Source: Syncephalis fuscata S228 (Eukaryota; Fungi; Zoopagomycota). Taken from it: a stretch of 64,000 bases of DNA. Where the stretch lies: positions 868,001-932,000 of the forward strand of contig JAHLTZ010000002.1 of the NCBI GenBank assembly GCA_025786725.1, written 5' to 3'. Positions 8,566-18,113 of the stretch are shown here, one piece after another. The number at the start of each line of letters is the position of its first letter. Position 1 is the first letter of the stretch. The position numbers and the translations under genes are program-made. Under the pieces are notes generated by a model. The model searched no databases, was not told where the DNA came from, and saw nothing but the letters and a program-made list of their open reading frames with translations.

Positions 8566-11792
<3,227 letters not shown>

Positions 11793-12069
11793 GAGATTAT
11801 CAAGCTTAAATGAAAGCATTATAATCGAGTCATCATTAGGACGCACATTTATTGGAATTTAGATTTGTAGATGGCATTGTCACTTAAACAGTCTGTCGTT
11901 GTTGTTCAATCGAATACATACATCATCTATCGATGCATTGTTCGATTTATTAAAGAAGTATTTAGCGTAGTCAATCATTTGTGTTACTATTGGTGAATTG
12001 TGTCATAGTTTATTAACAAATCAATAATACATAAAGAGAACAACGAGAATGCAAGTGTTGTAGGCACTG

Positions 12070-12157
12070 GCATGAATGAATCCAATAGACGTGACGCTCG
12101 TCGTTTAAGACGATATAAATGCTTTAGACGCCAGACTATTTTCACTACTCGGTTCAT
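12070..12157 (-). promoter_or_regulatory. Candidate SECIS element in the SelenoH 3' UTR
   Basis: On the minus strand: GUGAA-AAUAG-UC-UGGCGU...GCGUCA-CGU-CUAUU-GGAU. This gives a UGAN/NGAN kink-turn core, a ~13 bp helix II, unpaired AAA, and an apical UCGUC-UUAAAC-GACGA ministem. AUGAA/UUCAU can form helix I. Folded by eye. Confidence 0.7.
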
Positions 12158-12189
12158 CTCTATTCAATCATCGACCTGTTAGCTGTTTA

Positions 12190-12899
12190 TTACTTTGACT
12201 GTTTACTAGCTGCATTGATAACATTGGCAACTAGACTGACAACATGCGCTTCATCAGGAAACTTTTCCTTCCTCGGTGGCCCCTAAACAGCAAATGGGAT
12301 ATGAATTACTAATTATTTAATTGTATTTATTAGACTAGTATTTACCTTTTTGATGCCACTCCAAATGAGTTGGCCATCAGATGAATCCGCTTCCGTAAGA
12401 ACGGTGATTTCAAAGCTTTTTGAACGAGGCTTTGTTGGATTCATTTCAATAATAGCATTGGGAAATTGCGCTACAATCGCCTGAATTTAGTATTATTTGA
12501 TTAATAAATATTAGCGTAGTAATAATAAGGGTCTAGATAGTATACGAACATTGCCCATATTGGTTGCATTTCGGCCGTATACTCGTCAGCTTTTACTAAT
12601 TGCATTATTAGTCTTTTTGTTAGTAAAATGCTAATTAACTTACCAGTGTTCAAACACCACGGTAAAGGGTGGCTATTTACACGTTCGCTGGAAGATGAGT
12701 CAGTAACAGGTGAAATTGCATTACTCGGCGTTGGTTGTGATTCTTCGAGTCTTGCTTTCTTCGTTGGTGCTGCGTCAGTTACAGTACTGGCGCGCTTGGC
12801 TTTTCTCGAAGGTTTTGTCTGTTCAGCAGGTGTGGCATAAGGGCGTTTGCCCAGCCGTGCACTGCGTCGTGTAGACTTGGAAGTCGATTCGGGGGGCAT
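12190..12899 (-). CDS. SELENOH: Selenoprotein H (Rdx/thioredoxin-like fold, CxxU) with in-frame UGA at 12588-12586
   Basis: Exons 12899-12644, 12595-12550, 12480-12346 and 12282-12190 (all GT-AG). They splice to ...FTVVFEHCKS*RVYGRNATNMGNAIVAQFPNAIIEMNPTKPRSKSFEITVL...IWSGIKKGPPRKEKFPDE, closely matching vertebrate SELENOH as I recall it (EHCTSURVYGRNA; NPTKPRRGSFEV; LWTGIKKGPPRKLKFPE). Basic N-terminus. One base is missing at ~12664-12669. Confidence 0.92.
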
Positions 12900-17528: not shown

Positions 17529-18113
17529 TTATTTCTTCTGGAACTTCGTTTGAGCGTCAATCTGGATTTTTTCAATATTACCGCAGGCAATACGAGCACC
17601 AGATGGATCGTAAATGACGAGTGAACGACCAAGAACACTATGTTCGCCATCGCTTAGAGCAATGGTGGGATCTAGATAGGCTATGTTTTCAAACTGCACC
17701 TTTTCAGTGCTCGCAAACTTAATTTTGCCAAATTTGCCACTCATATCGCCTAGCTCACACTTGTTCAGCGTTTCCTTTGTGCACTGGGCTCCTTTCATCT
17801 TGTATGGGTCAAAATGCCCCCCTGTGGCAGCGCAGTCGCCATTCGCTGGTACCGGATTCTCGTGGACATAATAGGTGTATTCACCACATTTAGGAATTTT
17901 GCCGCCCATCGAACCATAAAAGGCTACACCCGCACCCGACTTCCATGGCCTAATGAAAAAGAAAGCTTCAAATTCATTTGCCTTAGCGCTAACATAGGCA
18001 TGCTGGAATGGAGTCATGTCCTCGGTTGTTTCGGCTGGGAGAGCTGTCACGGTCAAGCTGGTGAAAGCAAGTGCAAGCATGCAAGCGTGGAATACATTCT
18101 TGAGGCCCATCAT
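17529..18113 (-). CDS. Secreted Cu/Zn-SOD-fold protein (fungal Cu-only SOD5-like) with substituted metal ligands
   Basis: Signal peptide plus YYVHENPVPANGDCAATGGHFDP, CELGDMSGKFG and VLGRSLVIYDPSGARIACGNI. Intronless. Confidence 0.88.
   Translation of the reverse strand: MMGLKNVFHACMLALAFTSLTVTALPAETTEDMTPFQHAYVSAKANEFEAFFFIRPWKSGAGVAFYGSMGGKIPKCGEYTYYVHENPVPANGDCAATGGHFDPYKMKGAQCTKETLNKCELGDMSGKFGKIKFASTEKVQFENIAYLDPTIALSDGEHSVLGRSLVIYDPSGARIACGNIEKIQIDAQTKFQKK

Follow-up and report, generated by a model that had tools for sequence, protein, structure and literature searches.

A SELENOH gene with an in-frame UGA and the genes of a selenocysteine pathway in the Zoopagales fungus Syncephalis fuscata

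We found a gene for selenoprotein H (SELENOH) in Syncephalis fuscata, on the minus strand of the window (the whole stretch of 64 kb that was analysed, to which positions refer unless a contig is named), running from an ATG at 12899 to a TAA at 12192-12190. At a probability of about 0.93, we take the locus to be an intact, single-copy, four-exon SELENOH ortholog with a UGA read as selenocysteine (Sec), that is, a real selenoprotein gene. Reading of the in-frame stop codon as Sec is almost certain, judging from the gene, its ortholog in another family of the Zoopagales, and the Sec machinery encoded in the genome.

Results

Gene structure and transcript

The original prediction had joined GAA CAC TG to T AAA AGC TGA CGA GTA TAC by splicing, and we found this junction at the place where it had been put, on the minus strand. 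The prediction had also let the frame run on for about 87 codons past the UGA; counting to the TAA gave 261 nt, or 87 codons. All three introns have GT-AG boundaries (Table 1), and the assembly contains one copy of the gene. Exon 1 ends inside the Cys codon, after its second base. The N-terminal arm is basic, with K and R making up 20% of its first 75 amino acids.

Transcript and genomic evidence came from contigs assembled from public runs, one set from RNA (X1) and one from DNA (X2). The X1 contig (depth 786) skipped exactly the three SELENOH introns, so that it represents spliced RNA, and covered exon 1 from 12883 down. The splice joints and the TGA, for which the original prediction had proposed an RNA check, were all carried by this contig, and the TGA was unchanged in both X1 and X2. 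One low-depth X2 contig was without a base at 12569, and this is contradicted by X1.

The SELENOH RNA contig continued directly into the convergent kinesin gene (window 11098-12281), so that the 3' ends of the two genes may overlap; contigs do not mark transcript ends. Elsewhere in the window, positions 17529-18113 on the minus strand hold a Cu/Zn SOD-like ORF with a signal-peptide-like start.

Table 1. Positions of SELENOH features and of the neighbouring gene in the window
Feature	Position	Strand	Description
Exon 1	12644..12899	-	Basic low-complexity N-terminal arm, then first Rdx strand ending VVFEH
Site of dropped assembly base (artefact)	12669..12670	-	X1 and X2 both carry the base
Intron 1	12643-12596	-	48 nt, GTAAGT..TAG; splits the Cys codon; junction in X1
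Exon 2	12550..12595	-	46 nt, KS-U-RVYGRNA
In-frame UGA	12586-12588	-	Codon 89, U of the CxxU motif; predicted selenocysteine
Intron 2	12549-12481	-	69 nt, GTTCGT..CAG; junction in X1
Exon 3	12346..12480	-	NPTKPRSKSFEI ... WSGIKK; core of Rdx (SelT/W/H) domain
Intron 3	12345-12283	-	63 nt, GTAAAT..TAG; junction in X1
Exon 4, coding part	12190..12282	-	GPPRKEKFP ... TAA at 12192-12190
SECIS-like element, form-2-like	12074..12160	-	45 nt past the stop; transcribed in X1
Kinesin gene	8871..11792	+	Convergent neighbour, partly delimited; syntenic in Thamnocephalis

A missing base in the assembly

As assembled, the SELENOH exons total 530 nt and the ATG at 12899 is out of frame with EHC, a break between the ATG and the CxxU exon that the original prediction had overlooked. 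X1 showed an additional T behind 12669 at the same depth of 786, and X2 showed an additional base in the same stretch together with substitutions that, by table reading, give synonymous codons for SQPFT. With the base restored, the ORF is 531 nt long and encodes 176 amino acids, with Cys86 and the UGA at codon 89. Since the RNA and DNA runs both carry the base, the assembly has a one-base deletion at about 12669, a consensus error. The base was plausibly dropped where two alleles differ. The deletion puts the ORF track into the wrong frame; the original explanation of that frame, read-through of an intron, was correct in part, and the deletion is also responsible.

The presence of the base in the transcript removes three other readings of the broken frame. 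A fourth intron upstream (12782-12673) was considered as a repair of the frame and excluded, as X1 is continuous across the region. The assembled ATG frame never gets to EHC, and the locus could accordingly be seen as a decaying copy, a pseudogene with a frameshift at 12669 and a stop. However, the additional base occurs in RNA and DNA runs in two synonymous versions, and the locus is spliced, single-copy and conserved in Thamnocephalis, so we consider a pseudogene extremely unlikely. The two frames could also be joined by a programmed -1 frameshift. Slippery heptamers follow the pattern X XXY YYZ, which C CCU UUA at 12671-12665 (minus strand) fits in the ATG frame, and a -1 shift there yields the EHC frame. 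The heptamer is nevertheless in frame only through the missing base, and a transcript with the base needs no shift, which leaves this reading with a negligible probability.

Public protein records

Standard annotation was predicted to miss the gene, and two protein records bear this out. KAI9599223.1 (S. fuscata, 177 aa) was 100% identical across exon 3 in a search made with exon 3 alone; it has exon 2 translated in the wrong frame and is without CxxU. The next match to exon 3, RKP07101.1 from Thamnocephalis sphaerospora, skips the CxxU exon 2. In the NCBI taxonomy both species belong to the Zoopagales, S. fuscata in the Piptocephalidaceae and T. sphaerospora in the Sigmoideomycetaceae. The model in KAI9599223.1, with exon 2 in the other frame, is spliced, free of stops and present in the databases. 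It requires, however, the missing base and an intron-2 donor that is unused in the RNA contig, and its exon-2 residues are without any match in homologs; that it describes a real protein is hardly conceivable.

Identity and orthologs

The motif EHC|KS-TGA, a CxxU with an in-frame UGA, follows the first beta strand and was found in the spliced RNA. The part encoded by exons 3 and 4 alone matched TIGR02174 (SelT/W/H) with an E value of 8.8e-8 and PF10262 with an E value of 7e-4; both scores were just below the whole-protein cut-offs because the query was without the CxxU part. For the C-terminal domain, a crab protein that bears the name Selenoprotein H gave 45% identity (E 3e-18). C-terminal motifs specific to SelH, as against SelW and SelT, were present together with the basic N-terminal arm, and the Thamnocephalis ortholog carries the UniRef name Selenoprotein H. 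Homology searches were made with single exons or with proteins from the databases. No solved relative of SELENOH was found by sequence. The spliced RNA, TIGR02174 and the Thamnocephalis ortholog agree with the SELENOH signature that the original prediction had recognised, with the UGA on the U of CxxU.

Conservation of the UGA in related species had been proposed as a further check. Thamnocephalis DNA has an exon of 46 nt with KS-TGA-RVYGRSA, flanked by introns at equal positions, including the split Cys codon. Across exon 2 the TGA and 9 of the 14 other whole codons keep their amino acid, which speaks against chance; third positions have changed around a TGA that has not, the pattern that selection for the codon would give. 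Exon 3 was 64% identical between the two species, and the two SELENOH loci have the convergent kinesin neighbour in common. Homolog searches, which were word- and length-limited, gave no fungal SelH other than that of Thamnocephalis.

SELENOH loci of two metagenome eukaryotes (L057 and L059) also have an intron inside the Cys codon and a TGA at the Sec site. The L059 protein was 74% identical over its best segment, and L059 may come from a further early-diverging fungus or from a protist.

Sec machinery in the genome

A full Sec pathway had been predicted for this organism, and tRNA-Sec, SPS, PSTK, SecS, eEFSec and SBP2 were all found in the genome. The tRNA-Sec scored 76.9 bits and has a UCA anticodon; ARAGORN gave no tRNA within the 64-kb window. 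SecS scored above its profile cut-off, and the best family for PSTK was TIGR03575 (E 1.2e-11 for one exon). SPS (contig C235:307.2-308.8k) has an in-frame UGA of its own in KG-U-GCK. eEFSec was located with PF21131; it begins with a SelB-type GTPase and contains domain 4, and among solved structures its best match was human eEFSec. The best selB matches were rejected as eEFSec, being mitochondrial EF-Tu and EF-1alpha.

The L7Ae domain of SBP2 had human SBP2 as its best solved match (7zjw_B, E 3.7e-14), and upstream of it lies a K-rich stretch that, on visual comparison with the motif shown in PMC2673426, is SID-like. The L7Ae domain is like that of human SBP2, and the S. fuscata protein differs in running on, in one open frame, into about 350 amino acids of ankyrin repeats (contig C79:302.5-305k). 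NCBI labels this gene as an ankyrin repeat protein, with a model that appears to be without the upstream K-rich part. The word- and length-limited homolog searches gave no relative of the SBP2-ankyrin fusion, and we found no paper describing it.

Several of these genes matched more than once. Contig C223 has SecS in two places (880.3-881.7k, minus; 888.0-889.4k, plus), oppositely oriented and separated by about 7 kb, and there is another copy on C242. tRNA-Sec (C68 and C132) and eEFSec (C310 and C62) each gave identical matches on two contigs. The paired tRNA-Sec and eEFSec contigs are probably haplotypes that were left uncollapsed, which fits the two synonymous versions of SelH.

Other selenoprotein candidates

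A glutathione peroxidase (GPx) gene has a TGA at the catalytic site (ASK-TGA-GFT) and is the third gene with a UGA at the Sec site, besides SELENOH and SPS. The GPx loci lie at C223:519.3-519.9k and C301:43.1-43.5k. A near-identical copy with Cys (TGC) is without introns 1-3, and it has an altered fourth donor and a 3'UTR hairpin from which 68 nt are lost. Going by these differences, the Cys copy appears to be a partly processed retrocopy in which Sec gave way to Cys and the SECIS was lost.

The MsrA, SelO and SelU homologs contain Cys. A thioredoxin-glutathione reductase (TGR) candidate was rejected as a glutathione-reductase-like gene with no GCUG tail. A C-D-UGA-G-C context was seen on contig C112 at about 830.4k (minus strand), with in-frame stops close upstream and downstream; no selenoprotein family was recognised there. 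The PF10262 profile gave no match in the whole genome, not even SELENOH. The exons are short, which accounts for this blank, and the blanks for deiodinase-like proteins and Sep15/SelM therefore carry no weight.

We considered whether the Sec genes came from a contaminant, such as the host, a bacterium or another eukaryote. S. fuscata is a mycoparasite and is grown on a host fungus, which speaks for such a source. Against it, SelH is on a contig of 996 kb, has short introns and shows synteny to another Zoopagales genome, and SecS, PSTK, GPx, SPS and SBP2 have introns and lie on contigs of 313-979 kb. Contamination is a most improbable source of these genes.

SECIS-like element in the 3'UTR

Using our own structure scan, which allows bulges, we found the UGAN/NGAN quartet, helix II and unpaired adenines all in the 3'UTR of S. 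fuscata SelH. The SECIS-like element consists of helix I, a GUGAA core (12145-12141), a helix II of about 13 bp, GGAU (12083-12080), an unpaired AAA at +15 (counted in nt from the core) and a 5-bp apical helix. Equally stable matches occurred in 0 of 40 shuffled SelH UTRs. The Thamnocephalis SelH hairpin (L033:2717-2790, about 75 nt past the stop) has a CUGAC core, a 12-bp helix II and AAA at +18, and 1 of 40 shuffles gave an equally stable match. The two hairpins have one plan and unrelated sequence. The SPS element, about 55 nt past its stop, is of form 2 and more canonical, with AUGAA, AAA at +13 and a z-score of -3.3.

In a strict scan, the thresholds of which were chosen post hoc with the three elements already known, the SelH element was the sole match in the window, which was cut into 318 pieces of 400 nt so as to cover both strands; one match each came from the SPS UTR and from the Thamnocephalis SelH UTR. 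Folded without constraint, the S. fuscata SelH hairpin had a z-score of -0.38, no better than shuffles. The Rfam model SECIS_1 (RF00031) gave no match at SELENOH or anywhere in the genome. It also missed the canonical-looking SPS element, which shows that the model is insensitive in this genome. An ungapped SECIS scan picked up neither of the S. fuscata elements, and the extra matches to a sequence pattern common to the hairpins of SelH and SPS were at chance level (8 matches, against 4 in the control). The SECIS elements were not alignable in register by MAFFT.

We suggest tentatively, and with considerable doubt, that Zoopagales use an elongated SECIS variant read by an SBP2 with C-terminal ankyrin repeats, together a fungal form of the Sec-recoding apparatus. 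Such a variant would have a non-A base before UGA, a helix II of 12-13 bp, AAA at +15 to +18 and a long apical loop, and the element of GPx would be more divergent.

Discussion

Meaning of the UGA

The UGA might have a meaning other than Sec, with ribosomes stopping at it, to leave an 88-aa basic peptide or a target of nonsense-mediated decay (NMD), or reading it through as Cys or Trp. The SECIS is atypical and is missed by Rfam, and the Sec readout is deduced from nucleic acid rather than from protein. However, the two families have conserved the 87 codons that follow the UGA (64% identity in exon 3), the UGA falls exactly on the Sec site of the family, and the whole Sec pathway has been retained. 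A TGA also serves as the ordinary stop of the GPx gene, so that there is no general change of the code. These observations make a meaning other than Sec very unlikely.

Under the preferred reading, in which the UGA encodes Sec, the spliced mRNA would be translated into a protein of 176 amino acids with a basic arm and, by the fold of its family, a thioredoxin-like Rdx domain carrying C86-K-S-U89. SPS would supply selenophosphate, and PSTK and SecS would convert Ser-tRNA(Sec) into Sec-tRNA(Sec). SBP2 would bind the GA/AG core of the element in the 3'UTR (12074-12160), and eEFSec would bring Sec-tRNA(Sec) to the UGA, which would be recoded as in the eukaryotic route. Human SELENOH is nucleolar and has redox activity (PMC10646972). 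The fungal product would most likely resemble animal SELENOH, as a nuclear or nucleolar thiol-selenol redox protein for peroxide removal or redox sensing, and its basic arm may, as in the family, direct nuclear or nucleolar targeting.

The mRNA may also be subject to NMD. In NMD that depends on the exon junction complex (EJC), the UGA would precede the last junction by more than 50-55 nt and the mRNA would decay when selenium is low. Counted from the UGA, junction 2 comes after 36 nt and junction 3, the last, after 171 nt, and the genome has mago nashi. From this arrangement, selenium-sensitive NMD of SELENOH mRNA is possible.

Comparison with known systems

Mariotti et al. (bioRxiv 10.1101/314781) report Sec in five, later nine, early-diverging fungi from the Harpellales, Gonapodya and Bifiguratus. 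SelenoH is there the best-conserved fungal selenoprotein, found in all Sec fungi but Gonapodya; a SECIS was detected in 5 of 16 fungal selenoprotein genes and none in the other 11; and GPx is not among the seven selenoprotein families listed in the preprint. The S. fuscata gene is like the SelenoH genes of Harpellales and Bifiguratus adelaidae in its family, its UGA at CxxU, its eukaryotic machinery and in having been missed by annotation. S. fuscata differs in belonging to another subphylum (Zoopagomycotina, order Zoopagales) and in living as a mycoparasite, not as an insect-gut symbiont. It also differs from that set in having a SELENOH with a SECIS-like element that is structurally supported across families, and a genome with a Sec-GPx.

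Compared with animal SELENOH (human, arthropod), the basic arm, EHC-x-S-U, NPxKPR..FE and WxGIKKGPPRKxKFP are alike, and the N-terminal arm of S. fuscata is longer than that of the human protein. The SELENOH loci of other eukaryotes that were compared have a TGA at the Sec site, an AUGA core and AA at +10 to +12. The SelH elements of the two Zoopagales species are longer than these: the core is GUGA in S. fuscata and CUGA in Thamnocephalis, the AAA stands at +15 to +18, and the apical loop is long. The form 2 SECIS (PMC2673426) shares with the S. fuscata SelH element the tandem GA/AG quartet, helix II, unpaired adenines, an extra apical helix and the location in the 3'UTR. However, the distance from helix II to AAA and the apical loop are longer in S. 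fuscata, and RF00031 gives no score.

Novelty and significance

The original prediction had proposed a Sec-using fungal lineage. The machinery of S. fuscata and the TGA in two families of Zoopagales uphold this, but the novelty is narrower, as Sec and SelenoH have been on record in fungi since 2018-19 and the new part is the lineage. Amses et al. (2022) count 11 of 137 genomes as Sec-encoding, Zoopagomycota included, with the species shown in a figure only. In the accessible literature we found no published statement of Sec use in Syncephalis, Thamnocephalis or Zoopagales, and the Zoopagales are probably, though not certainly, unrecorded before as Sec users. To a specialist, the new parts would be the elongated SECIS, the GPx with Sec and the fusion of SBP2 to ankyrin repeats.

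The results correct two public protein records, KAI9599223.1 and RKP07101.1. If the Cys GPx is a retrocopy that lost its SECIS, the lost 68 nt would locate a non-canonical GPx SECIS. An elongated SECIS read by the SBP2-ankyrin protein, if true, would explain why the SECIS goes undetected in most fungal selenoprotein genes. A native fungal Sec system would also be a candidate for transfer to yeast, a use that Mariotti et al. (bioRxiv 10.1101/314781) suggest. With a candidate SECIS that is found across families on a fungal selenoprotein mRNA, the form that fungi use is now directly testable.

With S. fuscata and Thamnocephalis, a second subphylum of Zoopagomycota joins the short list of Sec-encoding fungi. 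The Sec trait of the Zoopagales is most simply explained by vertical inheritance from the fungal ancestor and retention in at least two families. Its presence in two Zoopagales families moves the inferred losses further back and raises their number, and shows that Sec use in fungi has no tie to insect-gut or aquatic life.
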